Source: Macrostomum lignano (Eukaryota). Taken from it: a stretch of 64,000 nt of DNA. A program made the translations under genes and the position numbers. Positions 7,881-46,964 of this stretch are shown piece after piece. Below the pieces are notes generated by a model, which saw nothing but the letters and a program-made list of their open reading frames with translations, ran no database searches and was not told the DNA's origin. Positions within the stretch are counted from its first letter, which is position 1, and each line of letters opens with the position of its first letter. The stretch covers positions 186,001-250,000 of the forward strand of contig NIVC01001654.1 of the NCBI GenBank assembly GCA_002269645.1, in the 5' to 3' direction.

Positions 7881-8261
7881 CCTTGCAGGTCCTCTCACCT
7901 ATTTTTAAGCACACAAGTTTCCCATATACTTGTGGAGTTTATTGACACCAGTTCCTATGAAATTGACTGCTATAGTTTATCTGCAAAAAATCTGCAACCA
8001 GTTTCAATATTCCTCACTTTCTTATTTCTACTTCATCAGTAGTGTACCTGAACTGTGAGCACAGATAATGTTATGAAATTAGCGCGTATATTTTCGTGAA
8101 AGGAGCCACACCTCCCCTATTATGGCATTAGACACTAGAGCGTACATTCTACTAACTGATCTATACTTAGTAGTGTAGAGCTTTAGGGGTAGGATGCTTA
8201 AGGCTGCTTTTTAGTGTGTTAGAGGCGAGTAGCTAGAGTGTCAGAGACTGTCAGGGTGCCT

Positions 8262-9461
8262 GAGCTGGCTCAGAATCAGCTGCTCAACTTCCTGCTGAGC
8301 AGAGCTGGTTAACTGGCTCAGAATCAGCTGCTCAACTGCCTGCTGAGCAGAGCTGGTTAACTGGCTCAGAATCTGCTGCTCAACTGCCTGCTGAGCAGAG
8401 CTGGTTAACTGGCTCAGAATCTGCTGCTCAACTGCCTGCTGAGCAGAGCTGGTTAACTGGCTCAGAATCTGCTGCTCAACTGCCTGCTGAGCAGAGCTGG
8501 TTAACTGGCTCAGAATCAGCTGCTCAACTGCCTTCTGAGCAGAGCTGGTTAACTGGCTCAGAATCTGCTGCTCAACTGCCTGCTGAGCAGAGCTGGTTAA
8601 CTGGCTCAGAATCTGCTGCTCAACTGCCTGCTGAGCAGAGCTGGTTAACTGGCTCAGAATCTGCTGCTCAACTGCCTGCTGAGCAGAGCTGGTTAACTGG
8701 CTCAGAATCTGCTGCTCAACTGCCTGCTGAGCACAGCTGGTTAACTGGCTCAGAATCTGCTGCTCAACTGCCTGCTGAGCAGAGCTGGTTAACTGGCTCA
8801 GAATCTGCTGCTCAACTGCCTGCTGAGCAGAGCTGGTTAAATGGCTCAGAATCTGCTGCTCAACTGCCTGCTGAGCAGAGCTGGTTAACTGGCTCAGAAT
8901 CTGCTGCTCAACTGCCTGCTGAGCAGAGCTGGTTAACTGGCTCAGAATCTGCTGCTCAACTGCCTGCTGAGCAGAGCTGGTTAACTGGCTCAGAATCAGC
9001 TGCTCAACTGCCTTCTGAGCAGAGCTGGTTAACTGGCTCAGAATCTGCTGCTCAACTGCCTGCTGAGCAGAGCTGGTTAACTGGCTCAGAATCTGCTGCT
9101 CAACTGCCTGCTGAGCAGAGCTGGTTAACTGGCTCAGAATCTGCTGCTCAACTGCCTGCTGAGCAGAGCTGGTTAACTGGCTCAGAATCTGCTGCTCAAC
9201 TGCCTGCTGAGCACAGCTGGCTAACTGGCTCAGAATCTGCTGCTCAACTGCCTGCTGAGCAGAGCTGGTTAACTGGCTCAGAATCTGCTGCTCAACTGCC
9301 TGCTGAGCACAGCTGGTTAACTGGCTCAGAATCTGCTGCTCAACTGCCTGCTGAGCAGAGCTGGTTAACTGGCTCAGAATCTGCTGCTCAACTGCCTGCT
9401 GAGCAGAGCTGGTTAACTGGCTCAGAATCTGCTGCTCAACTGCCTGCTGAGCAGAGCTGGT
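8262..9461. repeat. 48-bp minisatellite (~25 copies) with a 480-bp higher-order duplication
   Basis: Unit gagctggttaactggctcagaatctgctgctcaactgcctgctgagca; variant units recur 480 bp apart (~8515/8995 and ~8730/9210). Confidence 0.95.
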
Positions 9462-9479
9462 GAACTGAATCGCCTTAAC

Positions 9480-10105
9480 TGGCACTGGAAATCGCTCACA
9501 AAAATCGCCCCAAATCAAGACGAAGCGCGCGATGCCCCGCAAAGAAGCCAACAACCCGGAGGCGCACATCACCACCAAGAAGCTGTTTGTCGGCGCCCTT
9601 CGCAAGGACGTCACCGACCAGCTGCTGCGGGACTTTCTCAGCCTACGGCACCATTGTCGACGCGTACATCGTCAGGGACAACGCCACGGGAGACAGTCGC
9701 GGCTTCGGCTTCGTCGTGTTCGATGACTATGACCCCGTGGACAAAGCGATGCTGTACAAGCCTCACCTGCTGCGCGCTGGAGGCTCAGTCAGCATCACGG
9801 ACGTGAAGAAAGGCCTCACCAAGGAGGAGCTGGCCAGAGCGCACCTTCTCGAGCAGCAGCAGTCTCGGCATGGAGGCCAACATGGGCGGCCCTCCCGGCG
9901 CTATGATGATGTCAGGCGGTGCCATGGGGCCCTGGGGTCCCATGATGGGACCCATGATGGGCGGCGGCAGCGGACCGAAGCCGCCGCAGCAGCAGCAGCA
10001 GCACGGAAAGCAGCCGCAGGCCGCGTCTTCAAAGCCCATCAAGAGTCCCGCTGGGGCTGGCGGCGGCGGCGGCCCAGCACCCAACGGCATGGGCGGCCCT
10101 GGAGG
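9480..10105 (+). pseudogene. hnRNP A/B-like RRM2 plus Gly/Met-rich tail; RRM1 missing; frameshifted
   Basis: KTKRAMPRKEANNPEAHITTKKLFVG...RGFGFVVFDDYDPVDK parallels the hnRNP A1 linker and RRM2 (RNP2/RNP1). Frameshifts near 9510, 9635 and 9865; intronless. Confidence 0.7.
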
Positions 10106-15013: not shown

Positions 15014-15620
15014 AACTACATGATTGAAGTACATGAAATCAATTTGCAGACTGATATAGCTTATTCTAAGAGCAGGTGCTTGAATAATCACGGAGCATGT
15101 ATACACGACATTTTAAGCTATAAAAGTACATCTTAAGTATTTATCAGTATTATATGCAGTAAAATTTCTCGAACATAGATTACTGTTTCATGCAAATATC
15201 TGCTACCTGTGCATTTGGCTTGAATATGTCATTAAACAGCATTGGCAATTGGGTATTGAAGTCCGCAGAACAAAATCGCTGAGAAAAGCCCACGTCAAAG
15301 CAGAAACGCAGTTTGAAGGGAAAAAGCAATTCAGCATGCAGTGTGAATTGAATTGCAGCACAAATGTACAAAACTGCAGTTCACAGCAGGAGGGCTGCTC
15401 TCACTAAACTAGCTCATTTTCTAAAAGCTAAAAGACAGACAGATTTAGGACACGCAGATCCCTCATCAAGCCAGCATGCAGACGATTGAAATAGACCGTT
15501 TCTGGCCATGCATGCCAAGTCAAAATGTAAAGACGATTCAATGTGTTTCAAGCAGAACACGAAGAACCAAAATCAGAATAAAGAGTTTAATTAAACAAAC
15601 GCAAGTTGCATGAAGTTCAA

Positions 15621-18600
15621 TTAAAAGCAAAAATAATAAAACAAAAGTCTTCTTCTCTGACCTCGACTTTGCGACTCGACTTTAAGGGCTCCAGCCACTG
15701 CATCAAGACTCTCCAGCTTCTGCCTGACCCAGCCGATCTTCTCCTCGTCCTGCGTCTCCATGGCGACGCGTCTCTCTTTCTCGATCATCTTTATCTGCCG
15801 CAGGCTGAGCTCCACGTGCTCGCGGCAGTCGCTGTAGTGAGCCAGAGTGAGCAGCTCCTCCAAGTCCGGGTCTCCAAGCAGCTCTCGCTTCCAATCCTTT
15901 AGTTTAATTGCAGGTGCGCGATTGCGGAGCAGCTCAGCTTGGAGACTCCAGCTCAGGCAGCGGAAGTTCACGTACAGGTGGGAGGAGAGAGGCTGCGACA
16001 GTCTGGCTGTGAACAGAGTCTGCGTGAACTCGGGAAGGAATGGGAAGCGAGGCGGAGAGTCGCAGGGGAGGCAGAACCTCCACGCCCAGTCTGAGTCTTC
16101 TGGCAGTTTTCTAATGTAGCTCTCTTCTCGAATATGCTGTGGCTTCAACCCTGACTCAACCTGATATCTCTGCAGCTCCATCGCGAGTCTCTCAGCCTCC
16201 TCAGATTCTCCGAACTTCAAATGCGCCATGGCGGTCATGCACAGGGCGGCGCACTTGCACCACTGCAGCTCATGAAGGAGACTGAGCTGACTCATCAGAG
16301 TGTCTCTGTTGCTCGATTCCGACTGCAGCTCGCTCACACACTGGTGCACCACACTGTACACGTCTGCGAACTTGTAGTAAATTGTTGGATAACGATCACT
16401 TCCTTCCCTGATCTCCGTGACAGCAGGCGGCGCTGTCAGAGGCAGCAGAGTGAACGGGTGAAAATAGAACTTCTCTGACTGCAGAGGTCTCACGAGTCTC
16501 CTCAGCTGCTCGACCACTCCGCCGAAGTCGCTTCTCAGCTCACAAAGTCGGTCTCGAATCCTCGCCTTCGTGTTGTCGAAGTCGCCGCCGATTCCAGCGT
16601 TCTTGAAGTAGAGCAGAGCGTCGGGCATGAAGAAGTGCGGCATGCACTCATCGGGCGAGCTGCTGCCCGAGTCGATGAAGCTCAGCATCATGTCGAGAGA
16701 CTCCTTAAGCAGAGCGATCAGATTGTGGGGCTGCCAAGCGTCAATTTGAGGATGTGCGCCATGCTTCTTCAGCATGAAGAATAGCAGAGTCTTCGCATGG
16801 TAGGTCTTGAGTCCAGGTGTGTCCAGAGTGAGCGGCAAGTGTCTCTTGAAGATAAACTTGATGAGTGTGAACAGCTGGCCTTGGACTGTGCTCAGCTGTC
16901 TCATGATCCGTTTCTCATGGAAGCTGAAGCTCACTCTGAGCTCGTTGGTCGAGCTCGGTCTTGTCGCTCGCACGAGGTGAACATCATCACTGAATGGAAG
17001 CAGTTTTATAACTCTGTGTGCACAGAAACTGCTGCAGCACTTGATGGCATGGCACGTGTCCTGTGCAGGCTGCACACCGCATGCTGCGGCTGTGACAGCA
17101 GGTTGGCTGCCTGCAGAGCGCAGTGAGAGGAGAGTGTCGAGTGAAGAAGATGGGGTTGGTTTGCAGCTGCTTGAGTGTGTCGGTTGAGTTCGTGTGTGAG
17201 TGCTACTACTGTAGTCAATGAGTGAAGCAAAGTATTTGTTGAAATGCAGCGGTAAGGAGTTGATGATGGGCAGAGAGGGAAAGAAATTATTTTACATTGT
17301 TGCAGTTTGTTGCAGTTTACTTTCTTGCGCATGGCAACTCATGATAATTGTTTAATAACCTGTGAGGTGGTGAGGCAGTGCAATGATTGGTAGAATTTGA
17401 ATTGGTTGGCAGAATTTGTATTCAAAGCGAGTGCTGGATGGTTTTAAACTGAGCAAGGTGTGAAAGTGAGGTTGAGAAGTTCAGGCAGTGGGTATCGAAT
17501 TGAGCAAAGTTGATGGGGCTAGTATTGGGTGGGGATGAGGCGAGCGTGACTGACCTGCTCCGACTGGCACCTGTGCGTGGCCCTCGTTGACTTGCAGTTG
17601 AGTGGCGTTTCTGCAGGAATCATCTCGTCCATGGCAGCCACCTTCGAGATGGAACAGTTGCCCATCAAGCAGCACAGTCCAGTCAATGTCGGAGTCTGCA
17701 TCTGTCCTGCCGTTGACTTGGAGCAGACTGTTGGCCCAGCCCTCTGCGTAGCTGCCGGTCATCCGCCTGCCATCCTGTGTGAGGACTTGAGTGACTTTTT
17801 CCAGCCAGTCAGCGAGTTTTTGCTGACAGTTGGCTCTCTGTTTGGTGAATCCCGCCTCGTTGAGAAGTGGATGCAGGTGGTGGTGAGAGAGTCTGGAAGG
17901 TTCTGACTGGGGAACTGTCAGGGGAACTGACTGGTTGGGATTAAGCAGTCGGAGGACCTGCCGCTGCTCAAATCGCTGTGCGAGCTGCGCACACGTGAGG
18001 CCCTGACTGTCTCGATGGCTGGCATCGGCTCCATTGTCGATGAGAGTCTTGGCTGCTCGCACGTGACCGGCGTGGCAGGCTCGTGACAGAGCAGTGCGAC
18101 CGTGTTTGTCTTGAGCGCGAAGTGAGGCGCCGAGATGGATGAGTTTGAGAATGAGTTCGTGCTGACCAGCATCAGCTGCGAGCATGAGAGCGGTGGCTCC
18201 GGTGTTGTCGTCTGGGAGATCGACATGCTGTGTGGCGAATCGGTGATGATTGAGCAGTGTGGCGGCAAGAGCGACGTGTCGCTGGGAGATGGAGAGATGG
18301 AGTAGTTGTGAGATTTGAGCTGGCTGCATTTGAGAGACGGTTTTGTTGAGAACGGAGTTGGTGCCTTGGATGGCCAAGTTAGCAGTGGAGGTGAGGATGG
18401 TGTTGTATTGGAAGAGACAGTGCGGCTGAAGGTCTAAAGAGGCGACGAGAGGTTCGTGTCTTTGAGAGCAAGCGTAGAGTGCGCATTGGAAACGGAGCTT
18501 CGCTTTTAGATCGTGACTTGAGAGACAGGAGACGAGAAACTGGACGATTTGAAGGTGACCAGTGGTTGCAGCCCATTCGGCAGCATCGATGCAGCAGGTG

Positions 18601-18785
18601 TCCCTTTCAGAGTGGTCAATGATTTGTGGGACGAGAAACTGGACATCTTGAAAGCGACCATAGTGTGCAGCTAGAAGAGTAGCGCTGACGATTTCAGAGC
18701 AGTGTCCTTGGGCCGCAGCGCGTCGGGCAGTTTGGGTGATGCTGTCTGTGGTTACGGGCTGTTGGACACATTGATTCTGGTCCAT
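15621..18785 (-). CDS. Ankyrin-repeat / cGAS-like (Mab-21, cGLR) nucleotidyltransferase fusion, gene B (exons 18785-17555 and 17110-15621; ~906 aa)
   Basis: ANK repeats, then the NTase motif GSYAEG...SDID. The donor GCAG|GTCAGT and acceptor CTCTGCAG| join in frame to QDTCHAIKC (putative third acidic residue). Mab-21 motifs follow: ELRVSFSFHEK, LKTYHAKTLLF, W...L..LL..L, CMPHFFMP. Confidence 0.85.
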
Positions 18786-18844
18786 GGTTCTGGAGAGCGG
18801 AGCTGTGGTGCATTAGTGGTGCGAGAGCGTGTAAGAAAGAGACT

Positions 18845-19120
18845 TTGTGGAAGGAGAAAGTTGAAAGTGGATATGAAATGGAGAAGGAAAGAAGGGGAGG
18901 AAAAAAGAAGGGAAGGAGAAGGAGGGGAGGAAGAAGGAGAAGGAGGGGAGGGAGGGAGGGAGTGAGAGAAAGGGGAGGGAGAGGGGGGAAAAAGAAGGGA
19001 AAAAGAAGGGAGGGAGAAGGAGAGAAAGCAGTAGAGAGAAGGAGAAGGAGGGAAGGGAGCGAGAGAGGAGGAAGTGTGGGAGAAAGAGAGGAAGAAAAGG
19101 GGAGCGAAGGAGAGGGGAGC
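18845..19120. repeat. Purine-rich low-complexity tract upstream of gene B
   Basis: GA-rich stretch; a shorter counterpart lies at 1920-1970 upstream of gene A. Confidence 0.8.
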
Positions 19121-19202: not shown

Positions 19203-19661
19203 TGCTGTCAGAGTGACAGATGTCAGTCACGGCTGCTATCAGAGTGGCAGATGTCAGTCACGGCTGCTGTCAGAGTGGCAGATGTCAGTCACGGCTGCTG
19301 TCAGAGTGGCAGATGTCAGTCACGGCTGCTGTCAGAGTAGCAGATGTCAGTCACGGCTGCTGTCAAAGTGGCAGATGTCAGTCACGGCTGCTGTCAGAGT
19401 GGCAGGTGTCAGTCACGGCTGCTGTCAAAGTGGCAGATGTCAGTCACGGCTGCTGTCAGAGTGGCAGGTGTCAGTCACGGCTGCTGTCAGAGTGGCAGAT
19501 GTCAGTCACGGCTGCTGTCAGAGTAGCAGATGTCAGTCACGGCTGCTGTCAAAGTGGCAGATGTCAGTCACGGCTGCTGTCAGAGTAGCAGATGTCAGTC
19601 ACGGCTGCTGTCAAAGTGGCAGATGTCAGTCACGGCTGCTGTCAGAGTGGCAGATGTCAGT
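19203..19661. repeat. 31-bp minisatellite (~15 copies) upstream of ANK-cGLR gene B
   Basis: Same unit as 2036-2584. Confidence 0.95.
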
Positions 19662-22296: not shown

Positions 22297-22434
22297 AATA
22301 AATATCTGAGCAACTGGAATTCCCAGGAACACTCTTAGATGCCGAATTCTTAAATATAGCTGCAGTTAACGAGGCTCTCAATGGGAATGGAATCCTATAT
22401 TTTTCAGAGACTGCACTTTTCCACAGCAGTTAAT

Positions 22435-23490
22435 GGGATCAGATAGGGTGTGGGATCAGATAGGGTGTGGGATCAGATAGGGTGTGGGATCAGATAGGGT
22501 GTGGGATCAGATAGGGTGTGGGATCAGATAGGGTGTGGGATCAGATAGTGTGGGATCAGATAGGGTGTGGGATCAGATAGTGTGGGATCAGATAGGGTGT
22601 GGGATCAGATAGGGTGTGGGATCAGATAGGGTGTGGGATCAGATAGGGTGTGGGATCAGATAGAGTGGGATCAGATAGTGTGGGATCAGATAGGGTGTGG
22701 GATCAGATAGTGTGGGATCAGATAGGGTGTGGGATCAAATAGGGTGTGGGATCAGATAGGGTGTGGGATCAGATAGGGTGTGGGATCAGATAGGGTGTGG
22801 GATCAGATAGGGTGTGGGATCAGATAGGGTGTGGGATCAGATAGGGTGTGGGATCAGATAGAGTGGGATCAGATAGTGTGGGATCAGATAGGGTGTGGGA
22901 TCAGATAGTGTGGGATCAGATAGGGTGTGGGATCAAATAGGGTGTGGGATCAGATAGGGTGTGGGATCAGATAGGGTGTGGGATCAGATAGGGTGTGGGA
23001 TCAGATAGGGTGTGGGATCAGATAGGGTGTGGGATCAGATAGGGTGTGGGATCAGATAGGGTGTGGGATCAGATAGTGTGGGATCAGATAGGGTGTGGGA
23101 TCAAATAGGGTGTGGGATCAGATAGGGTGTGGGATCAGATAGGGTGTGGGATCAGATAGGGTGTGGGATCAGATAGGGTGTGGGATCAGATAGGGTGTGG
23201 GATCAGATAGGGTGTGGGATCAGATAGGGTGTGGGATCAGATAGGGTGTGGGATCAGATAGGGTGTAGGATCAGATAGGGTGTGGGATCAGATAGTGTGT
23301 GGGATCAGATAGGGTGTGGGATCAGATAGTTTGGGATCAGATAGGGTGTGGGATCAGATGGGGTGTGGGATCAGATAGGGTGGGATCAGATAGGGTGTGG
23401 GATCAGATAGGGTGTGGGATCAAATAAGGTGTGGGATCAGATAGGGTGTGAGATCAGATAATGTGGGATCAGATAGCGTGTGGGATGAGA
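22435..23490. repeat. 17/15-bp G-rich minisatellite (~60 copies)
   Basis: Unit gggatcagatagggtgt, with a gggatcagatagtgt variant. Confidence 0.95.
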
Positions 23491-24318
23491 TGGCGCCAAT
23501 ACAGATGAGTCAGTGGCGCCAATACAGATGAGTCAGTGGCACCAATTGCAGTTGAGTCAGTGGCGCCAATACAGATGAGTCAGTGGCACCAATTGCAGAT
23601 GAGTCAGTGGCGCCAATACAGATGAGTCAGTGGCACCAATTGCAGATGAGTCAGTGGCACCAATTGCAGATGAGTCAGTGGCACCAATTGCAGATGAGTC
23701 AGTGGCACCAATTGCAGATGAGTCAGTGGCACCAATTGCAGATGAGTCAGTGGCACCAATTGCAGTTGAGTCAGTGGCACCAATTGCAGATGAGTCAGTG
23801 GCACCAATTGCAGATGAGTCAGTGGCACCAATTGCAGATGAGTCAGTGGCGCCAATACAGATGAGTCAGTGGCACCAATTGCAGATGAGTCAGTGGCACC
23901 AATTGCAGTTGAGTCAGTGGCACCAATTGCAGTTGAGTCAGTGGCACCAATTGCAGTTGAGTCAGTGGCACCAATTGCAGATGAGTCAGTGGCACCAATT
24001 GCAGATGAGTCAGTGGCACCAATTGCAGATGAGTCAGTGGCGCCAATACAGATGAGTCAGTGGCACCAATTGCAGATGAGTCAGTGGCGCCAATACAGAT
24101 GAGTCAGTGGCGCCAATACAGATGAGTCAGTGGCACCAATTGCAGATGAGTCAGTGGCACCAATTGCAGATGAGTCAGTGGCGCCAATACAGATGAGTCA
24201 GTGGCGCCAATACAGATGAGTCAGTGGCGCCAATACAGATGAGTCAGTGGCGCTAATACAGATGAGTCAGTGGCACCAATTGCAGATGAGTCAGTGGCGC
24301 TAATACAGATGAGTCAGT
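23491..24318. repeat. 23/24-bp minisatellite (~35 copies) carrying TGAGTCA and CCAAT
   Basis: Units gatgagtcagtggcaccaattgca and gatgagtcagtggcgccaataca. Confidence 0.95.
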
Positions 24319-24505: not shown

Positions 24506-27500
24506 CTTTGGCTGTGTCAGGCTGTATTTGGCTGTTTGAGGGCTGCCTTTGGCTGTGTCAGGCTGTATTTGGCTGTTTGAGGGCTGCCTTTGGCTGTGTC
24601 AGGCTGTATTTGGCTGTTTGAGGGCTGCCTTTGGCTGTGTCAGGCTGTATTTGGCTGTTTGAGGGCTGCCTGTGGCTGTGTCAGGCTGTATTTGGCTGTT
24701 TGAGGGCTGCCTGTGGCTGTGTCAGGCTGTATTTGGCTGTTTGAGGGCTGCCTGTGGCTGTGTCAGGCTGTATTTGGCTGTTTGAGGGCTGCCTGTGGCT
24801 GTGTCAGGCTGTATTTGGCTGTTTGAGGGCTGCCTTTGGCTGTGTCAGGCTGTATTTGGCTGTTTGAGGGCTGCCTTTGGCTGTGTCAGGCTGTATTTGG
24901 CTGTTTGAGGGCTGCCTTTGGCTGTGTCAGGCTGTATTTGGCTGTTTGAGGGCTGCCTGTGGCTGTGTCAGGCTGTATTTGGCTGTTTGAGGGCTGCCTG
25001 TGGCTGTGTCAGGCTGTATTTGGCTGTTTGAGGGCTGCCTGTGGCTGTGTCAGGCTGTATTTGGCTGTTTGAGGGCTGCCTGTGGCTGTGTCAGGCTGTA
25101 TTTGGCTGTTTGAGGGCTGCCTGTGGCTGTGTCAGGCTGTATTTGGCTGTTTGAGGGCTGCCTGTGGCTGTGTCAGGCTGTATTTGGCTGTTTGAGGGCT
25201 GCCTGTGGCTGTGTCAGGCTGTATTTGGCTGTTTGAGGGCTGCCTGTGGCTGTGTCAGGCTGTATTTGGCTGTTTGAGGGCTGCCTGTGGCTGTGTCAGG
25301 CTGTATTTGGCTGTTTGAGGGCTGCCTGTGGCTGTGTCAGGCTGTATTTGGCTGTGTGAGGGCTGCCTGTGGCTGTGTCAGGCTGTATTTGGCTGTGTGA
25401 GGGCTGCCTTTGGCTGTGTCAGGCTGTATTTGGCTGTGTGAGGGCTGCCTGTCGCTGTTTGAGGGCTGCCTTTGGCTGTGTGAGGGCTGCCTTTGGCTGT
25501 GTCAGGCTGTATTTGGCTGTGTGAGGGCTGCCTGTGGCTGTGTCAGGCTGTATTTGGCTGTTTGAGGGCTGCCTGTGGCTGTGTCAGGCTGTATTTGGCT
25601 GTTTGAGGGCTGCCTGTGGCTGTGTCAGGCTGTATTTGGCTGTTTGAGGGCTGCCTGTGGCTGTGTCAGGCTGTATTTGGCTGTTTGAGGGCTGCCTGTG
25701 GCTGTGTCAGGCTGTATTTGGCTGTTTGAGGGCTGCCTGTGGCTGTGTCAGGCTGTATTTGGCTGTTTGAGGGCTGCCTGTGGCTGTGTCAGGCTGTATT
25801 TGGCTGTTTGAGGGCTGCCTGTGGCTGTGTCAGGCTGTATTTGGCTGTGTGAGGGCTGCCTGTGGCTGTGTCAGGCTGTATTTGGCTGTTTGAGGGCTGC
25901 CTGTGGCTGTGTCAGGCTGTATTTGGCTGTGTGAGGGCTGCCTGTGGCTGTGTCAGGCTGTATTTGGCTGTTTGAGGGCTGCCTGTGGCTGTGTCAGGCT
26001 GTATTTGGCTGTGTGAGGGCTGCCTGTGGCTGTGTCAGGCTGTATTTGGCTGTGTGAGGGCTGCATTTGGCTGTGTCAGGCTGTATTTGGCTGTTTGAGG
26101 GCTGCCTGTGGCTGTGTCAGGCTGTATTTGGCTGTGTGAGGGCTGCCTGTGGCTGTGTCAGGCTGTATTTGGCTGTTTGAGGGCTGCCTGTGGCTGTGTC
26201 AGGCTGTATTTGGCTGTGTGAGGGCTGCCTTTGGCTGTGTCAGGCTGTATTTGGCTGTTTGAGGGCTGCCTGTGGCTGTGTCAGGCTGTATTTGGCTGTG
26301 TGAGGGCTGCCTGTGGCTGTGTCAGGCTGTATTTGGCTGTGTGAGGGCTGCCTTTGGCTGTGTCAGGCTGTATTTGGCTGTGTGAGGGCTGCCTGTCGCT
26401 GTTTGAGGGCTGCCTTTGGCTGTGTGAGGGCTGCCTTTGGCTGTGTCAGGCTGTATTTGGCTGTGTGAGGGCTGCCTGTGGCTGTGTCAGGCTGTATTTG
26501 GCTGTTTGAGGGCTGCCTGTGGCTGTGTCAGGCTGTATTTGGCTGTTTGAGGGCTGCCTGTGGCTGTGTCAGGCTGTATTTGGCTGTTTGAGGGCTGCCT
26601 GTGGCTGTGTCAGGCTGTATTTGGCTGTTTGAGGGCTGCCTGTGGCTGTGTCAGGCTGTATTTGGCTGTTTGAGGGCTGCCTGTGGCTGTGTCAGGCTGT
26701 ATTTGGCTGTTTGAGGGCTGCCTGTGGCTGTGTCAGGCTGTATTTGGCTGTTTGAGGGCTGCCTGTGGCTGTGTCAGGCTGTATTTGGCTGTTTGAGGGC
26801 TGCCTGTGGCTGTGTCAGGCTGTATTTGGCTGTTTGAGGGCTGCCTGTGGCTGTGTCAGGCTGTATTTGGCTGTTTGAGGGCTGCCTGTGGCTGTGTCAG
26901 GCTGTATTTGGCTGTGTGAGGGCTGCCTGTGGCTGTGTCAGGCTGTATTTGGCTGTGTGAGGGCTGCCTGTGGCTGTGTCAGGCTGTATTTGGCTGTGTG
27001 AGGGCTGCCTGTGGCTGTGTCAGGCTGTATTTGGCTGTTTGAGGGCTGCCTGTGGCTGTGTCAGGCTGTATTTGGCTGTGTGAGGGCTGCCTGTGGCTGT
27101 GTCAGGCTGTATTTGGCTGTTTGAGGGCTGCCTGTGGCTGTGTCAGGCTGTATTTGGCTGTTTGAGGGCTGCCTTTGGCTGTGTCAGGCTGTATTTGGCT
27201 GTGTGAGGGCTGCCTGTGGCTGTGTCAGGCTGTATTTGGCTGTTTGAGGGCTGCCTGTGGCTGTGTCAGGCTGTATTTGGCTGTGTGAGGGCTGCCTGTG
27301 GCTGTGTCAGGCTGTATTTGGCTGTGTGAGGGCTGCCTTTGGCTGTGTCAGGCTGTATTTGGCTGTTTGAGGGCTGCCTGTGGCTGTGTCAGGCTGTATT
27401 TGGCTGTGTGAGGGCTGCCTGTGGCTGTGTCAGGCTGTATTTGGCTGTGTGAGGGCTGCCTTTGGCTGTGTCAGGCTGTATTTGGCTGTGTGAGGGCTGC

Positions 27501-29411
27501 CTGTCGCTGTTTGAGGGCTGTCTTTGGCTGTGTGAGGGCTGCCTTTGGCTGTGTCAGGCTGTATTTGGCTGTGTGAGGGCTGCCTGTCGCTGTTTGAGGG
27601 CTGCCTTTGGCTGTGTGAGGGCTGCCTTTGGCTGTGTCAGGCTGTATTTGGCTGTGTGAGGGCTGCCTGTCGCTGTGTCAGGCTGTATTTGGCTGTGTGA
27701 GGGCTGCCTTTGGCTGTGTCAGGCTGTATTTGGCTGTGTGAGGGCTGCCTTTGGCTGTGTCAGGCTGTATTTGGCTGTGTGAGGGCTGCCTGTCGCTGTG
27801 TCAGGCTGTATTTGGCTGTTTGAGGGCTGCCTGTCGCTGTGTGAGGGCTGCATTTGGCTGTGTGAGGGCTGCCTTTGGCTGTGTCAGGCTGTATTTGGCT
27901 GTTTGAGGGCTGCCTGTCGCTGTGTCAGGCTGTATTTGGCTGTTTGAGGGCTGCCTGTCGCTGTGTGAGGGCTGCCTTTGGCTGTGTGAGGGCTGCCTTT
28001 GGCTGTGTCAGGCTGTATTTGGCTGTTTGAGGGCTGCCTGTCGCTGTGTCAGGCTGTATTTGGCTGTTTGAGGGCTGCCTGTCGCTGTGTGAGGGCTGCC
28101 TTTGGCTGTGTGAGGGCTGCCTTTGGCTGTGTCAGGCTGTATTTGGCTGTTTGAGGGCTGCCTGTCGCTGTGTCAGGCTGTATTTGGCTGTTTGAGGGCT
28201 GCCTGTCGCTGTGTGAGGGCTGCCTTTGGCTGTGTGAGGGCTGCCTTTGGCTGTGTCAGGCTGTATTTGGCTGTTTGAGGGCTGCCTGTCGCTGTGTCAG
28301 GCTGTATTTGGCTGTTTGAGGGCTGCCTGTCGCTGTGTGAGGGCTGCCTTTGGCTGTGTGAGGGCTGCCTTTGGCTGTGTCAGGCTGTATTTGGCTGTTT
28401 GAGGGCTGCCTGTCGCTGTGTCAGGCTGTATTTGGCTGTTTGAGGGCTGCCTGTCGCTGTGTGAGGGCTGCCTTTGGCTGTGTGAGGGCTGCCTTTGGCT
28501 GTGTCAGGCTGTATTTGGCTGTTTGAGGGCTGCCTGTCGCTGTGTGAGGGCTGCCTTTGGCTGTGTGAGGGCTGCCTTTGGCTGTGTCAGGCTGTATTTG
28601 GCTGTTTGAGGGCTGCCTTTGGCTGTGTGAGGGCTGCCTTTGGCTGTGTGAGGGCTGCCTTTGGCTGTGTGAGGGCTGCCTTTGGCTGTGTGAGGGCTGC
28701 CTTTGGCTGTGTGAGGGCTGCCTGTCGCTGTGTGAGGGCTGCATTTGGCTGTGTGAGGGCTGCATTTGGCTGTGTGAGGGCTGCCTGTCGCTGTTTGAGG
28801 GCTGCATTTGGCTGTTTGAGGGCTGCCTGTCGCTGTGTGAGGGCTGCCTGTCGCTGTGTGAGGGCTGCATTTGGCTGTGTGAGGGCTGCATTTGGCTGTT
28901 TGAGGGCTGCCTTTGGCTGTGTGAGGGCTGCATTTGGCTGTTTGAGGGCTGCCTGTCGCTGTGTGAGGGCTGCCTTTGGATGTGTGATGGCTGCCTTTGG
29001 CTGTGTGATGGCTGCCTTTGGCTGTGTGAGGGCTGCATTTGGCTGTGTGATGGCTGCCTTTGGCTGTGTGAGGGCTGCATTTGGCTGTGTGAGGGCTGCA
29101 TTTAGCTGTGTGAGGGCTGCCTGTGGCTGTGTGAGGGCTGCCTGTGGCTGTGTGAGGGCTGCATTTGGCTGTGTGAGGGCTGCATTTGGCTGTGTGAGGG
29201 CTGCCTTTGGCTGTGTGAGGGCTGCCTTTGGCTGTGTGAGGGCTGCATTTGGCTGTGTGAGGGCTGCATTTGGCTGTGTGAGGGCTGCATTTGGCTGTGT
29301 GAGGGCTGCATTTAGCTATGTGAGGGCTGCCTTTGGCTGTGTGAGGGCTGCATTTGGCTGTGTGAGGGCTGCATTTGGCTGTGTGATGGCTGCATTTGGC
29401 TGTGTGAGGGC
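24506..29411. repeat. 4.9-kb compound minisatellite of 20- and 21-bp subunits
   Basis: ggctgtgtcaggctgtattt (20) and ggctgt(g/t)tgagggctgcct(t/g)t (21): 41-bp dimers on the left, 62-bp trimers in the middle, 21-bp monomers on the right. Confidence 0.95.
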
Positions 29412-31003: not shown

Positions 31004-32480
31004 TCACTGCAGTCTCATCCGACTGAGCTTGGCGTGAGTCCAGCTGTCTCTCTGCTCCGCTGCAGTTTCCATGGCAACCAGGCGCCCCAAGTCGGCCCCG
31101 TCTCGCCGCAGCTTCGCCCTCGCCCACAGCCTCCGCTCCTCATCTTCCCTGCTGCGGTGAGCGCCGCTGTCGCTGCCGCTGCGGTTCGAAACTCGCCACC
31201 GCTTCTGCCTGACCCAGCCGATCTTCTCCTCGTCCTGCGTCTCCATGGCGACGCGTCTCTCTTTCTCGATCATCTCCATCTGCTGCAGGCTGAGCTCCAC
31301 GTGCTCGCGGCAGTCGCTGTAGTGAGCCAGAGTGAGCAGCTCCTCCAAGTCCGGGTCTTCTTCCAGCTCTCGCTTCCAATCCTCTAGTTTTATTGCAGGT
31401 GCGCGATTGCGGAGCAGCTCAGCTTGGAGACTCGAGCTCAGGCAGCGGAAGTTCACGTACAGGTGGGAGGAGAGAGGCTGCGACAGTCTGGCCGTGAACA
31501 GAGTCTGCGTGAACTCGGGAAGGAATGGGAAGCGAGGCGGAGAGTCGCAGGGGAGGCAGAACCTCCACGCCCAGTCTGAGTCTTTTAGCAGTATTATCTT
31601 GATCGGGTACAGGCTACTCTCTTTTCGAATATCCTGTGGCTTAAACCCTGACTGAACCTGATGTCTCTGCAGCTCCATCGCGAGTTTCTCAGCTTCCTCA
31701 GATTCTCCGAATTTCAAATGCGCCATGGCGGTCATGCACAGGGCGGCGCACTTGCACCACTGCAGCTCATGCAGGAGACTGAGCTGCCTCATCAGGGTGT
31801 CTCTGTCGCTCAATTCCGACTGCAGCTCGCTCACACACTGGTGCACCACACTGTACACGTCTGCGAACTTGCAGTACATTTCTGGATAGTCAGTTCCTTT
31901 CCTGATCTCCGTGACAGCAGGCGGCGCTGTCAGAGGCAGCAGAGTGAACGGGTGAAAGTAGAACTTCTCTGACTGCAGAGGTCTCACGAGTCTCCTCAGC
32001 TGCTCGACCACTCCGCCGATGTCGCTTCTCAGCTCACAAAGTCGGTCTCGAACCCTCGCCTTCGTGTTGTCGAAGTCGCCGCCGATTCCAGCGTTCTTGA
32101 AGTAGAGCGGAGCGTCGGGCATGAAGAAGTGCGGCATGCACTCATTGGGCGAGCTGCTCGAGTCGATGAAGCTCAGCATCATGTTGAGAGACTCGTTGAG
32201 CAGAGCGATCAGATTGTGGGGCTGCCAAGCCTCAGTTTCAGGATCTGTGCCATGCTTATCCAGCATGAAGAATAGCAGAGTCTTTGCATGGTAGGTCTTG
32301 ACTCCAGGTGTGTCCAGATTGAGCGGCAAGTGTCTCTTGAAGATGAACTTAATGAGTGTGAACAGCTGGCCCTGGACTGTGCTCAGGTGTCTCATGATGT
32401 GTTTCTCTTGGAAGCTAAAGCTCACTCTGAGCTCGTTGGTCGAGCTCGGTCTGGTCGCCCGAACGAGGTGAACAAAACCA
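31004..32480 (-). pseudogene. cGLR copy C: partial tandem duplicate of the Mab-21 exon lacking all three catalytic acidic residues; reading frame intact
   Basis: Starts at FVHLVRATRPSS, fused to the 3' flank of copy D. No GS...DxD exon and no QDTCHA. Otherwise near-identical to B and D. Confidence 0.7.
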
Positions 32481-32958
32481 CTCTTGTCAGTCAGTTTTTT
32501 AATCCTGTCTCTCCAGCTTCTCCCTGACCCAGCCGACATATGAATTTTCCAGATACATGCAGCTAACTGCTGCCTGTTCATTTGGCTTGAATATGTCATT
32601 AAACAGCATTGGCAATTGGGTATTGAAGTCCGCAGAACAAAATCGCACAGAAAAGCCCGCATCAAAGCAGACACGCAGTTTGAAGGGAAAAAGCAATTCA
32701 GCATGCAGTGTGAATTGAATTGCAGCACAAATGTAAAAAACTGCAGTTCATAGCAGGAACGCAACCCTGCCAACCCTACCAACCCTGCCAACCCTGGCTC
32801 TAGATCTGTGCATTTCCTAAAGCAGGAGCAAAAAAGTTTTTGACAAGCTGAATTCAACAGAAGAAAATCAGGTAAAACCAACGGGAAAAGTACACAGTCA
32901 TTGGGTCCGAAACTTCAGTTCAGCAAAACGTAAAAATCTGAGCAACGAAGTCCTCAGG

Positions 32959-35432
32959 TCACTGCAGTCTCATCCAACTGACCTTGGTGTGAGTCCAGCT
33001 GTCTCTCTGCTCTGCTGCAGTTTCCATGGCAACCAGCCCCAGCCTCGCCCTCGCCCACAGCCTCCGCTCCTCATCTTCCTCTTCATCTTCGCTGCTGCGG
33101 TGAGCACCGCTGTCGCTGCCGCTGCCGCTGCGGTTCGAAACTCGCCACCACTTCTGCCTGACCCAGCCGATATTCTCCTCGTCCTGCGTCTCCATGGCGA
33201 CGCGTCTCTCTTTTTCGATCATCTCCATCTGCTGCAGGCTGAGCCGCACGTGCCAGCGGCAGTCGCTGTAGTGAGCCAGAGTGAGCAGCTCCTCCAAGTC
33301 CGGGTCTCCAAGCAGCTCTTTAATCCAATGATCGAATGCGTATGCAGGTGCACGATTGCGGAGCAGCTCAGCTTGGAGACTCCAGCTCAGACAGCGGAAG
33401 TTCACGTACAGGTGGGAGGAGAGGGGCTGCGACAGTCTGGCTGTGAACAGAGTCTGCGTGAACTCGGGAAGGAATGGGAAGCGAGGCGGAGAGTCGCAGG
33501 GGAGGCAGAACCTCCACGCCCAGTCTGAGTCTTCTGGCAATTTAGCTGGTTCATCGTATTTATCTGCTTGAATATCCTGTGGCTTCAACCCTGACACAAC
33601 ATGATGTCTCTGCAGCTCCATCGCGAGTCTCTCAGCCTCCTCAGATTCACCGAACTTCAAATGCGCCATGGCGGTCATGCACAGGGTGGCGCACTTGCAC
33701 CACTGCAGCTGTTGCAGGATACTGAGCTGCCTCATCAGTGTGTCTCTGTCGCTTGATTCTGACTGCAGCTCGCTCACACACTGGTGCACCACACTGTACA
33801 CGTCTGCGAACTTGTAGTACATTTCTGGAGAATACATTCCTTTCCTGATCTCCGTGACAGCAGGCGGCGCTGTCAGAGGCAGCAGAGTGAACGGGTGAAA
33901 GTAGAACTTCTCTGACTGCAGAGGTCTCACGAGTCCCCTAAGCTGCTCGACCACTCCGCTGATGTCGCTTCTCAGCTCACAAAGTCGGTCTCGAACCCTC
34001 GCCTTCGTGTTGTCGAAGTCGCCGCCGATTCCAGCGTTCTTGAAGTAGAGCGGAGCGTCGGGCATGAAGAAGTGCGGCATGCACTCATTGGGTGAGCTGC
34101 TCGAGTCGATGAAGCTCAGCATCATGTCGAGAGACTCCTTGAGCAGAGCGATCAGATTGTGGGGCTGCCAAGCTTCAATCGAAGGATGTGTGTCATTCTT
34201 CTCCAGCATGAAGAATAGCAGAGTCTTTGCATGGTAGGTCTTGAGTCCAGGTGTGTCCAGAGTGAGCGGCAAGTGTCTCTTGAAGATGAACTTGATGAGT
34301 GTGAACAGCTGGCCCTGGTCTGTGCTCAGGTTTCTCATGATGTCTTTTTCTTGGAAGCTGAAGCTCACTCTGAGCTCGTTGGTCGAGCTGGGTCTGGTCG
34401 CCCGCACGAGGTGAACTTTGTCGAAGTTGTATGGAAGCAGTTTTCTAATTCTGTTCTTAAAGAAACTGCTGCAGCATTCGATCGCATGGCACGTGTCCTG
34501 TGCAGGCCGCACGCCGCACGCCGTGGCTGTCACTGCAGGTTGGCTGCCTGCAGAGCGCAGTGAGCGGAGAGTCGCTTTGTGGCGAGTGGAAAAGATGGGT
34601 TGGTTTGAAACTGCATGAATGTGTTAGTTGAGTTCGTTCTACTCATGTTTCAGTGCTACTAATGATGTAATCTATAATTCGTTGCAATGCTTGCAGGGGC
34701 ACCGCAACGGAGTTGATGATGGTTGGGTAAAGAGACAATTATTTTACTTTCATTCAGACCAGGTTTTCACGTATTGCGTACTGTATGCATGCTTTTAACG
34801 TGTGTGCATGGCATTGCATAATAATTGTTTCATAACCTATGAGAGAGGTGCGATCGGAGTGATTGGTTGCCAGAATTTATATTTTAAGCGAAATGAGTTC
34901 TGCATGGTATTTCAACAAGGTTTCGAACTCATGTTGAACTTATGAACTCAGAAATTCAGCCACGATCGGTATCCAATAAATAATTGAGCAGAGTTAAGGG
35001 ACTTGGATTGGCATGGGGATTGGGATGAAGAACCCAGCCTCACACACCTGCTCCGACTGCCACCTGTGCGTGGCCCTCTTTGACCTGCAGCGGAGTGGCG
35101 TCTTTGCAGGAACCCTTTCTTTCGCAGCCACCTCTTAGATGGAACTCTTGCCCAGGAGCCAGCACAGTCCAGTCAATGTCCGAGTCTGCAGCTGTCCTGC
35201 CGTTCACTTGCACCATACTGTTGGCCCAGCCCTCTGCGTAGCTGCCCGTCATCTGCCTGCCATCCTGTGTGAGGACTCGAGCGACTCCTTGCAGCCAGTC
35301 AGCCAGTCTCTGCTGACACTTTGCTCTCTGCTCGGTGAATCCCGCATCGCTGAGCAGTCGATGCAGCCCCTCGTTTGAAAGTCTGGAAGGATACGAGTTG
35401 GTGGAGCAGGAGAGGTGTAAGTTCAGCTGCAT
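32959..35432 (-). CDS. cGAS-like (Mab-21/cGLR) nucleotidyltransferase copy D without ankyrins (exons 35432-35048 and 34547-32959; ~657 aa if the ATG at 35432 is used)
   Basis: GSYAEG...SDID exon, donor GCAG|GTGTGT, same acceptor context as B, then QDTCHA and Mab-21 motifs. An in-frame stop lies just upstream of the ATG. Confidence 0.75.
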
Positions 35433-37547: not shown

Positions 37548-37599
37548 CAAAATGATTTTTTATTAAAACACCTTGAAAATAAAAAATTGCTAATCATAA

Positions 37600-39910
37600 A
37601 AGAAGCGCCATGTCAAATATAGAAGAGCCACCATGTCGAACATAAAAGGGCCACCATGTCAAACATTAAAGAGCCACCTTGTCAAACATTAAAGAGCCAC
37701 CATTTCAAACCTAAAAGAGCCACCATGTCGAACATACAAGAGCCACCTTATCAAACATTAAAGAGCCACCATGTCGAACGAACATAAAAGAGCCACCATG
37801 TCGAACATTAAAGAGCCACCATGCAGAACATAAAAGAGCCACCATGTCTAATATAAAAGAGCCACCATGTCGAACATTAAAGTGCCATCGTGTCGAACAT
37901 TAAAGAGCCACCATGTCGAACATAAAGGAGCCACCATGTCGAACATAAAAAAGCCACTATGTTGAACATTAAAGAGCCACCATGTCAAACATTAAAGAGC
38001 CACCATGTAGAACATAAAAGAGCCACCATGTCTAATATAAAAGAGCCACCATGTCGAACATTAAAGTGCCATCGTGTCGAACATTAAAGAGCCACCATGT
38101 CGAACATAAAGGAGCCACCATGTCAAACATAAAAGAGCCACTATGTTGAACATTAAAGAGTCACCATGTCAAACATTAAAGAGCCACCATTTTGAACATT
38201 AGAGAGTCACCATGTCAAACATTAAAGAGCCACTTTGTTGAGTATTAAAGAGCCATGTCAAACACTAAAGAGCCACCATGTCAAACATTGAAGAGCCACC
38301 ATGTCAAACATTAAAGAGCCACTTTGTTGAATATTAAAGAGCCACTATGTCAAACAGTAAAGAGCCACCATGTCAAACATTAAAGAGCCACCATGTCTAA
38401 TATAAAAGAGCCACCATGTCGAACATAAAGGAGCCACTATGTCGAACATAAAAGAGCCACCATGTTGAAAATTAAAGAGCCACCCTGTAAAACATTTAAA
38501 AGATTCACCATGTCAAACAAATAAGTGACTTCATTTCAAACATAAAATAACCATCATGTCAAACAGAAAAGAGCCACCATGTCAAACATTAAAGAGCTAC
38601 CATGTCAAACATTAAAGAACCACCATGTAAAACATAAAAGAGCCATCATGTAGAACATAAAAGAGCCACCATGTCTAATATAAAAGAGCCACCATGTCGA
38701 ACATTAAAGTGCCATCGTGTCGAACATTAAAGAGCCACCATGTCGAACATAAAGGAGCCACCATGTCAGACATAAAAGAGCCACTATGTTGAACATTAAA
38801 GAGCCACTATGTCAAACATTAAAGAACCACCATGTAGAACATAAAAGAGCCACCATGTCTAATATAAAAGAGCCACCATGTCGAACATTAAAGTGCCATC
38901 GTGTCGAATATTAAAGAGCCACCATGTCGAACATAAAGGAGCCACCATGTCAAACATAAAAGAGCCACTATGTTGAACATTAAAGAGTCACCATGTCAAA
39001 CATTAAAGAGCCACCATTTTGAACATTAGAGAGTCACCATGTCAAACATTAAAGAGCCAATTTGTTGAGTATTAAACAGCCACAATGTCAAACAATAAAG
39101 AGCCACCATGTCAAACATTAAAGAGCCACTTTGTTGAATATTAAAGAGCCACTATGTCAAACATTAAAGAGCCACCATGTCCAACATTAAAGAGCCACCA
39201 TGTCTAATATAAAAGAGCCACCATGTCGAACATAAAGGAGCCACTATGTCGAACATAAAAGAGCCACCATGTTGAAAATTAAAGAGCCACCCTGTAAAAC
39301 ATTTAAAAGATTCACCATGTCAAACAAATAAGTGACTTCATTTCAAACATAAAAGAACCATCATGTCAAACAGAAAAGAGCCACCATGTCAAACATTAAA
39401 GAGCTACCATGTCAAACATTAAAGAACCACCATGTAAAACATAAAAGAGCCATCATGTCAAACATTAAAGAGCCATCGTGTCGAACATTAAGGAGCCACC
39501 ATGTCGAACATTAAAGAGCCACCACATCAAACATTAAAGAGCCACCATTTCAAACATAAAAAAGCCACCATGTCAAACATATATGTGATTCCATGTCGAA
39601 CATTAAAGAGCCACCATGTGAAACATATAAGAGACTTTATTTCAAACATAAAAGAGCCACTATGTTGAGCATTAAAGAGCCACAATGTAAAACATAGAAA
39701 CGACCATTTCGAACATTAAAGAGCCACCATGTTGAACATTAAAGGGCTACCATGTCAATCATTAAAGAGCCACCATGTCAAACATTAAAGTGCCATCGTG
39801 TCGAACATTAAAGAGCCACCATGTCGAACATAAAGGAGCCACCATGTCGAACATAAAAGATACACAATTTCAAACATAAAAGTGAGCGAATTTTAAAGGA
39901 GCCACTATAT
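37600..39910. repeat. ~22-bp satellite array in H1
   Basis: Unit aaagagccaccatgtc(a/g)aacat(t/a). Confidence 0.95.
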
Positions 39911-40644
39911 TGCTAAGGAAATTGTCGCACTAGCTACTTATTGTCTGGTGGATGCTTGCTATTTGGAGATGCTATCTATCTGGGGGATGCTTTCTATCTG
40001 GGGGATGCTTGCAATCTGAGGGATGCTTGCCATCTGGGGGATGCTTGCTGTCTTGGGATGATTTCTTTTTGCATTGCACTTCATTTGAGTAGTTTGTCTG
40101 TTTCTTTTGTGAAAGCTTTATTTGGCTATCTTCTTATTCCTTGTAGAGAACAGAGATTCTATGCAGATGTCCCCAAAAGTCCAATATACTAAAAATGAAA
40201 ATCTTGCTTGCTTGTAATCGATTAGAGAAAAAATGGCTTAACCGATTTTCATGAGACTTGCACTGTTTGATCAGAAATTTTCCCGTTACGGTACATGCAT
40301 CTTGGCTAAGAAATTGCTCCATGTTAAAGCGATTAAATATTCGAAAAACATGCTTTTTTGCAAAGGTCAAGCAAAATTTTCGACTTAAAACCCATTGTAA
40401 GAATGCTAGAGAAAAAACTGACTGGCTGAATTCTGATTCTGATAAAGATTGCATCACAACAAGTTGAAAACAGTGCCAAAGAAATGCACACACGACTTGA
40501 TTTAAATTGCGTAACCATATTGCTAACTTAAATTGAGACTGGTACTGGCTGACTGATAAATTGATTATGTCATAACTTTTTACTCTAATTGACTTGCTGT
40601 AAGAATTGAATTATAAGGGCCACAATTCATGTTCTCCAATTAAA

Positions 40645-40712
40645 AAGAGATAGCCTATATACGAACAGACTGGACTGCCAACGTAGAGACCTGGGTTCGA
40701 ATCTTAGTAGTG
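40645..40712 (+). other. tRNA-derived box in H2
   Basis: tagcctatat...tggactgccaac...gggttcgaatc. Confidence 0.5.
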
Positions 40713-40759
40713 AAAAATAATTTTTTTATTAAAACACCTTGAAAACACGAAACTGCTAA

Positions 40760-46860: not shown

Positions 46861-46964
46861 TAGAGGTAAACAGACTGACTGCTAAATGCAGGGACGATGG
46901 TTCGAATTTTTAGAGAGTGGAATTTTTTAATTAAAGCTTTTTAACACCAAGAAGAAAACTAAAA

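Follow-up and report, generated by a model that had tools for sequence, protein, structure and literature searches.

Gene structure at the ankyrin-cGLR locus

The contig NIVC01001654.1 of the flatworm Macrostomum lignano (assembly GCA_002269645.1) carries, at approximately 201.6-204.8 kb, a minus-strand gene of two exons whose predicted product joins an array of ankyrin (ANK) repeats to the nucleotidyltransferase (NTase) core of a cGAS-like receptor (cGLR). We analysed this gene within a 64-kb stretch of the contig (positions ~186,001-250,000, hereafter the window; contig and window are 100% identical over 41 kb), and all coordinates below are those of the window, with every part of the gene on the minus strand. 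In our assessment the gene is probably an intact, protein-coding paralogue of a family of M. lignano ANK-cGLRs and would, if its mechanism follows that of its homologues, encode a ligand-activated NTase.

The coding region (15621-18785) extends from an ATG at 18785-18783 to a stop codon at 15623-15621, and its homologues, all from M. lignano, are ANK and Mab-21_C proteins. Exon 1 (17555-18785, 1231 nt) holds codons 1-410 plus one nucleotide and encodes the N-terminal repeats, the canonical ANK repeats, the linker and the start of the N-terminal lobe (N-lobe) of the NTase with its GS and DxD motifs. Exon 2 (15621-17110, 1490 nt) encodes the remaining N-lobe with the third catalytic aspartate, the helical Mab-21 C-terminal lobe (C-lobe), the C-terminal domain and the stop codon. 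The GT-AG intron between them (17111-17554, 444 nt, GTCAGT...TCTCCTCTCACTGCGCTCTGCAG) has a polypyrimidine tract and a CAG acceptor, and its donor, GTCAGT, comes directly after the codon series ...GGA GCA G. Joining the exons (1231 + 1490) gives a coding sequence of 2721 nt that is in frame and specifies 906 amino acids and a stop, just as the first-pass annotation of this DNA had proposed for splicing at 17554/17111. The unspliced reading frame, by comparison, meets a stop 24 codons into the intron, at 17481.

The position of the intron is conserved among paralogues. In the annotated paralogue P0003 (L003), for which we rebuilt the exon structure, the intron interrupts the identical codon with near-identical flanks (GGAGCAG/GTGAGT...CACTGCGCTCTGCAG/GCAGCCAAC), and the same is true of a second family copy in the window, again with near-identical flanks (GGAGCAG/GT...CACTGCGCTCTGCAG/GCAGCCAAC). 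The peptide that spans the splice junction, ...EGHAQVPVGAG/SQPAVTA..., is present with minor substitutions in annotated M. lignano paralogues. If the BOX15 annotation is, as we presume, transcriptome-based, transcripts would back the junctions of the paralogues, though not that of the studied copy. At the level of sequence, the observation of an intact, spliced ANK-cGLR gene is confirmed.

An ATTAAA hexamer resembling a poly(A) signal is found 30 nt past the stop codon (15586-15591, minus strand). The 5' flank (18786-19100, minus strand) contains a CT-rich tract of ~250 nt that ends ...CTCTCCAG/AACC immediately before the ATG, a layout shared by the 5' flank of the neighbouring paralogue (TTTTTAG/AACA ATG), and the end of this tract is likely a cis- or trans-splice acceptor. 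We also considered an extra 3' exon, given that a donor-like CGAG/GTCAGA occurs near 15661 and that some paralogues end in ...SRGRKRKAESD. No matching mini-exon was found within 3.7 kb downstream, and for this reason, as well as the ATTAAA hexamer after the stop codon, the read-through C-terminus was kept.

Domains, predicted fold and active site

The N-terminal part of the protein is an ankyrin array, made of tandem 33-residue helix-turn-helix units that match Ank models and have DARPin and ankyrin matches by both sequence and structure. Pfam identified Ank_2 (E 4.3e-17) and Ank (E 4.4e-11), with the best stretch at residues 208-281. Three canonical repeats occupy residues 161-285 (17931-18305), where Pfam matches are accompanied by PDB sequence matches to DARPins and ankyrin-1/2. 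Ahead of them (residues 1-160, 18306-18785) are helical repeats of 33 aa that resemble degenerate ankyrin units, together with a helical connector; AlphaFold2 models this region as helix pairs from H13-26 through H155-167 with a predicted local distance difference test score (pLDDT) of ~85-95. The repeat unit of this region is the same 33-aa unit that occurs in 10 tandem copies in the neighbouring paralogue, where Pfam calls it Ank. A flexible linker (residues 286-300, 17886-17930; pLDDT <50 at 285-301) connects the array to the NTase core. The rest of this core beyond the exon junction, together with the helical C-lobe (residues 412-645, 16407-17110), was recognized by Pfam, by profile matches to cGLR1 (8gjy) and cGAS, by hhalign (C-lobe only) and by Foldseek. 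The protein ends in a family-specific C-terminal domain of ~260 aa (residues 646-906, 15624-16406) that has no Pfam match at E <= 1 and contains motifs conserved across paralogues (DWAWRFC, FLPEFTQ, LYVNFRCLSWSLQAELL and DPDxEELLTLA).

A full-length AlphaFold2 model, built on an alignment of 34 family members, had a pLDDT of 84.0 and a predicted template modelling score (pTM) of 0.72. It lays the protein out as helical repeats (13-281), a disordered linker (285-301), an alpha/beta lobe (339-471), a helical lobe (473-616) and the C-terminal domain (653-905). In this last domain helices are accompanied by short strands (727-792), and a long helix (863-905) terminates the chain. Searches with the full-length protein were dominated by ankyrins: a phmmer search of PDB sequences matched ankyrin proteins only, and in Foldseek DARPins dominated, with the first cGAS at rank 37. 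A second model was therefore built without the ANK region. This model of residues 296-906 had a pLDDT of 87.8 and a pTM of 0.88, so that the core and the C-terminal domain are predicted as a single rigid unit, relative to which the ANK array takes no fixed position. When it was searched against the PDB with Foldseek, ranks 1-25 were all cGAS, with template modelling (TM) scores of 0.50-0.55 normalised to the target. The top match was 4k9b_A (E 3.5e-8, TM 0.52 on the target, 365 columns, 15% identity), and after cGAS came MAB21L1 (E 1.5e-6) and MB21D2 (E 8.5e-6). The predicted structural homology to cGAS by which cGLRs are recognized, namely a two-lobed Mab-21 NTase, is thus seen in the AlphaFold2 core, in the Foldseek matches and in a Pfam Mab-21_C match (26.2 bits against a gathering cutoff of 24.1) at residues 503-575 (16617-16835).

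Comparison by sequence detects one of the two lobes. A family profile made from seven diverse family cores and searched against PDB sequences matched 'cGAS-like receptor 1' (8gjy, E 1.4e-6) and cGAS (4e-5), in each case over the C-lobe only. In an hhalign comparison with human cGAS, the C-lobe alone aligned as well, and the fold match of the N-lobe to cGAS comes from structure only. The same hhalign alignment has a 12-column gap at the position of the zinc thumb, so this insertion is absent. The marks of a vertebrate-type cGAS, namely an interlobe zinc thumb (H-x5-CC-x6-C) and a DNA-binding surface of strongly basic character, are not found in this protein, whose NTase core is weakly basic (isoelectric point 8.1, K+R 37 vs D+E 35).

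Since the N-lobe could not be mapped onto cGAS by sequence, the catalytic residues were placed with the help of the modelled secondary structure. G344-S345 (17751-17756), which is the G[S/G] motif of the activation loop, is invariant in alignment A1 and closes the first core strand (E339-343). After 20 intervening residues, D366-I367-D368 (17682-17690) opens strand E366-380 and supplies two of the catalytic acids, and a further 59 residues precede the third, D428 (17058-17060), inside strand E426-435 and in an R-P-x-x-D context within PAQDTCHA. Both acidic elements are at least 90% conserved in A1. In the model, this placement of the GS motif, the DID motif and D428 on their strands is the canonical arrangement of a Pol-beta-type NTase, and the spacing of 59 falls within the published cGLR motif definition, G[S/G] + [E/D]h[E/D] X50-90 [E/D].

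These results largely bear out the domain reading of the first-pass annotation. Pfam, AlphaFold2 and Foldseek agree with its order of ANK-like repeats, three canonical ANKs, NTase and Mab-21 lobe, and its GS-x20-DID motif and third aspartate in QDTCHA are exact. Its claim that the loop between GS and DxD is longer than that of cGAS also holds, with 20 residues here and 11 in human cGAS. Two of its points need amendment. The C-terminal extension, put at ~250 aa and called helical, does exist and contains helices, but the short strands show that it is not purely helical. The supposed deletion of a WP...R...WP segment corresponds to a real shortening, by ~10-20 residues relative to distant paralogues, of the segment past the third aspartate; the stretch that those paralogues retain at this position reads C-x-YP...P. 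The search with Mab-21 and Ank models that it had called for returned Ank families and Mab-21_C above cutoff, but no match at E <= 1 to PF03281, the Mab-21 N-terminal NTase model.

The conservation of the active site bears on whether this core is an enzyme at all. The core could instead be a Mab-21 scaffold of the MAB21L1 or MiD49/51 type, whose NTase fold would hold a nucleotide or a binding partner without catalysing a reaction, leaving the work to the ankyrin array. The good structural matches to MAB21L1 and MB21D2 noted above are compatible with this, as is the loss of acids in a minority of paralogues (NVN in P0034, S-I-K in P0035 and P0039). Among 100 family domains that cover the N-lobe, however, the glycine and the serine are each found in 98, D366 in 96, D368 in 94 and an aspartate or glutamate at the third acid in 91. 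The studied copy and 87 of these 100 relatives keep the full set (G-[SG], [DE]x[DE], [DE]) even though aligned paralogues diverge to 25% identity, a pattern difficult to account for unless catalysis has been selected for. Because of this motif conservation, the scaffold is the least likely of the rival explanations and, in our view, a very improbable one.

Four further residues, H379, C384, C391 and C436 (window ~17651-17034, minus strand), are conserved in 85-95 of the 100 family domains. They are located between DxD and just past D428, unlike the zinc thumb of cGAS, and may, at a guess, form a structural metal site.

Family expansion, tandem cluster and selection

A search with residues 290-906 returned 47 proteins at E <= 0.001, all from M. 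lignano, most of which carry Ank and Mab-21_C and the best of which is 84% identical. A profile search run exhaustively over 1.84 billion representative sequences gave 79 clusters at E <= 1e-30. All eight full-core profile matches whose source was looked up came from M. lignano; past E ~1e-19 the matches among those listed were mostly C-lobe-only, and the two that were source-checked were eukaryote assemblies. Judged by these sequence comparisons, the gene belongs to a lineage-specific expansion that, in the databases searched, is confined to M. lignano. One member, P0004 (PAA68676.1, BOX15_Mlig016402g1), is 80% identical to the studied protein over residues 290-906. Two gene models of the family carry additional domains. 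P0083 (PAA93319.1, BOX15_Mlig026614g1), which is on another contig and 2111 aa long, combines ANK repeats and a cGLR core with a C-terminal caspase (Peptidase_C14, 96 bits). The model represents either a genuine fusion of cGLR and caspase or a merger of two genes, and its caspase domain might hint at a direct link to cell death. The gene model of P0054 carries a WSC domain.

The window contains four family copies or fragments, in tandem and all on the minus strand. Paralogue 2 (4-1887) is partial, being cut off by the edge of the window. Its protein begins with MGQSQS and continues with ten ankyrin-like repeats of 33 aa, for which a 99-bp tandem array codes (808-1835, 10.4 copies, 91% matches), and then with canonical ANK repeats. 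As the studied gene has about two such N-terminal repeats and its neighbour ten, repeat number shifts between adjacent copies. Paralogue 3 (32962-35381) is ANK-less and corresponds to the annotated P0005 (BOX15_Mlig011252g1), found in pieces at 35381-35046 and 34554-32962 (tblastn 100% and 99.8%). The public gene model of P0005 spans ~30 kb (window 32959-62911, L001 5879-35831). The exon pieces at 35381-32962 cover residues 20-659 only, so the first ~19 residues must derive from further upstream in the span of the model. AT-rich sequence and satellites take the place of ANK exons at this locus, and P0005 is probably truncated and the first exon of its model doubtful. The fourth member is a 5'-truncated exon-2 fragment (31007-32509), ahead of which a duplicate of the studied gene's 3' flank is found at ~32650-32750.

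A 31-bp satellite, TGCTGTCAGAGTGGCAGATGTCAGTCACGGC, is located just upstream of two of the paralogues (2036-2584 and 19203-19661), and the duplicated unit therefore included the 5' flank. The copies also differ at their starts. The neighbouring paralogue (1885-1887) and P0004 begin with MGQ(S/N)QS, which is myristoylation-like, and the studied gene (18783-18785) begins with MDQNQC, without Gly2, so that membrane targeting may differ between copies. As read from these copies, the cluster is undergoing duplication, repeat-number change and decay.

In such a setting the studied gene could be a recent tandem copy that is itself silent or decaying, that is, an unexpressed young pseudogene-to-be in a disintegrating cluster. 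The truncated, ANK-less copy and the exon-2 fragment joined to a copied 3' flank are in keeping with this explanation. For the gene itself it can draw on the aspartate at residue 2 in place of the glycine of its neighbour and P0004, and on the annotation record: a database of 5.8 billion proteins contains no annotated product more than 84% identical to that of the studied copy, though the neighbouring P0005 is annotated on the same contig. The ratio of non-synonymous to synonymous divergence (Ka/Ks) speaks on both sides. Against the intact P0003 gene it is 0.53 overall, with a Ks of 0.21, and it varies by region, from 0.36 in the C-lobe and 0.40 in the ANK region to 0.67 in the N-lobe and 0.77 in the C-terminal domain; against the truncated neighbours it is 0.40-0.88. 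The values of 0.7-0.9 that occur in several comparisons agree with decay, whereas those of 0.36-0.40 in the C-lobe and ANK region do not. Taken together, ratios of 0.36-0.88 are intermediate and prove neither strong constraint nor positive selection, and the gene is fast-evolving yet not constraint-free.

The coding sequence has 2721 nt without a stop or frameshift at a Ks of ~0.2 from the closest intact paralogue in the comparison, a divergence at which neutral drift would, on a rough estimate, give several stops, and we infer from this open frame of 2.7 kb that selection acted over most of the history of the gene. The splice sites, all catalytic residues and the poly(A) signal are also intact. 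Weighing these observations, we consider it unlikely that the gene is a silent or decaying duplicate, and prefer to regard it as an intact member of its family.

The rest of the window is rich in repeats. Satellites occupy much of the intergenic space, at 24509-29411 (41 bp x 119), 37595-45814 (23 bp x ~350), 46960-49578 (23 bp x 116), 22434-24318 (17 and 24 bp arrays) and 8265-9467 (48 bp x 25 at 98% identity), and several of them yield long spurious open reading frames, for example at 8241-9614. An intronless open reading frame of 637 aa (56087-58000, plus strand) has an Endonuclease VII domain (29 bits) and only remote homologues, of up to 31% identity; it may be a mobile element. It is located in a block at ~56-62 kb with a GC content of 0.29, far below that of the remaining window. 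Rfam and tRNA scans of the 64-kb window gave no matches.

Possible activation and product in the light of known cGLRs

The analysis itself establishes the structure of the gene, the fold of its product, the conservation of its motifs, its place in the family and its tandem clustering, whereas catalysis, product, ligand and immune role are drawn from homology. Homology provides an outline of how an intact enzyme of this family would most likely work. The enzyme would normally be inactive, and binding of a ligand would reposition the unusually long GS activation loop, allowing the three acids to bind two Mg2+ or Mn2+ ions and to join nucleoside triphosphates into a cyclic di- or oligonucleotide. 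This second messenger would in turn switch on a downstream, cell-autonomous defence response. The ankyrin array would serve in this scheme as a module that binds the ligand or a partner, or as an autoinhibitory module.

Li et al. 2023 (Cell; preprint PMC9980059) defined the cGLRs and reported more than 3,000 of them, 87% of which are single-domain and some of which are fused to ankyrin or TPR repeats. The first-pass annotation had cautioned that ANK-Mab21 fusions might already appear in domain surveys, and this caution was well placed, as the survey names ANK-cGLR fusions and lists those of M. lignano (Ank_2 cGLRs PAA67649.1, PAA58690.1, PAA68676.1, PAA86972.1, PAA45980.1 and PAA68216.1 in its Table S2). 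The studied gene is therefore new only as a family member, whereas the family and its architecture are already published and partly tested. Five M. lignano proteins of the family (#89-93) were among the 140 purified for the biochemical screen (Table S3), and for two of these, #93 (PAA68676.1) and #92 (PAA93208.1), the constructs both begin after the ankyrin region. The 15 active enzymes came from insects, anemones, molluscs, hydras and corals and included no flatworm protein, so flatworm enzymes were not reported active with dsDNA or dsRNA. M. lignano is also not among the entries of Table S5 in the part of that table available to us, and our literature search found no publication naming both Macrostomum and Mab21. 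As to the receptor for a cyclic product, Wu et al. 2014 reported that STING was lost in flatworms, in a study that predates the M. lignano genome; our literature searches found nothing specific on STING in M. lignano, and no sequence search for STING was made.

Several of these results weigh against an intact, ligand-activated enzyme. The actives of the screen include no flatworm protein and STING is reported lost from flatworms; to these are added the missing annotated product of the studied copy, the high Ka/Ks in its N-lobe and C-terminal domain, the lack of a PF03281 match, and sequence profiles that align the C-lobe alone and leave the N-lobe unaligned. Part of this evidence would also fit an active NTase of a different chemistry, one that makes linear 2'-5' or 3'-5' oligonucleotides in the manner of OAS, or that transfers a nucleotide to a target, either protein or RNA, bound by its ankyrin array. 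Its active site would be complete and conserved, as observed; the lengthened GS-to-DxD loop and the shortened segment after the third aspartate could reflect the different reaction; and neither the reported absence of STING nor the lack of a cyclic product from the five relatives screened by Li et al. 2023 would be surprising. The structural neighbours of the core are nevertheless cGAS and cGLRs, with no OAS in the Foldseek top 50 and no OAS1_C (PF10421) or PAP match by Pfam, and the absence of a product in a single screen is weak evidence. We judge a different chemistry to be quite unlikely and return to a cGLR that would make a cyclic product.

A more specific proposal, which we put forward as doubtful, is that the Macrostomum ANK-cGLRs are a branch of the cGLRs that senses proteins rather than nucleic acids, in which a fast-evolving ankyrin array of variable copy number (2 to 10 or more 33-aa repeats in neighbouring paralogues) recognises pathogen or damage proteins and frees the NTase core, whose product then acts via a receptor other than STING. 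Activation through the ankyrin array or by a protein, which the first-pass annotation had already suggested, agrees with the missing zinc thumb, the core isoelectric point of 8.1, the silence of the ANK-less constructs and the rapid change in repeat number, none of which is a test. Since the screened constructs were made without the ankyrin region and most screened cGLRs were inactive, these agreeing observations are not evidence for a protein ligand.

A single gene matters little in this context: a published cGLR family gains one more paralogue, unannotated and apparently intact. The family is of wider interest: flatworms are usually cited as lacking cGAS and STING, yet the ANK-cGLRs of M. 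lignano with a complete catalytic motif set form ~80 clusters at 50% identity. Their tandem clusters, with shifting repeat numbers and decaying copies, have the birth-and-death dynamics typical of immune receptor families. M. lignano is a tractable animal in which RNA interference and transgenesis are available, and the neighbouring copies offer natural variants for asking whether the ankyrin array is the sensor.

The systems already known with which the studied protein can be compared include Mab-21 family members without a demonstrated product. Two of these, MAB21L1 and MB21D2, have the same fold as its core but are both single-domain and give weaker sequence-profile matches (E 0.065 and 0.76), and the role of MAB21L1 is developmental and non-immune (Li et al. 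2023, PMC9980059). Vertebrate cGAS, represented by mouse 4k9b, is the best structural match and has in common the two-lobed Mab-21 NTase fold, the GS loop and the acidic triad. The studied protein differs from it in sequence (~15% identity), in its longer GS loop, weakly basic core and missing zinc thumb, and in its added ANK and C-terminal domains. The best PDB match by sequence profile is to the invertebrate cGLR1 (8gjy, E given above), which also lacks a zinc thumb; it is a single-core protein without an ANK array or C-terminal domain, and the match to the studied family is to the C-lobe only.

Closer in architecture are the ANK-cGLR fusions of other animals, such as Stylophora pistillata, where a fusion to ANK or death domains is seen in 3 of 42 cGLRs (Li et al. 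2023 Fig. 1C/4C, PMC9980059). They likewise place on a cGLR core an ankyrin module, which Li et al. 2023 interpret as mediating interactions with proteins or ligands. Outside this core there is no detectable sequence relationship to the studied protein, whose residues 290-906 have homologues only in M. lignano at E <= 0.001. The closest known counterparts are the M. lignano cGLRs of Li et al. 2023, from which the studied gene differs in its locus, its unannotated product, its approximately two N-terminal 33-aa repeats and its residue 2 (D rather than G). The published constructs of these cGLRs begin downstream of the ankyrin region, and no activity was reported for them. In other respects the studied gene and these cGLRs are alike, being of the same species, family and architecture (a variable ANK array, the core and a C-terminal domain) and sharing the motifs TGSYAEGWANSL.QVNGRT.ADSDIDWTV and RPAQDTCHAI.

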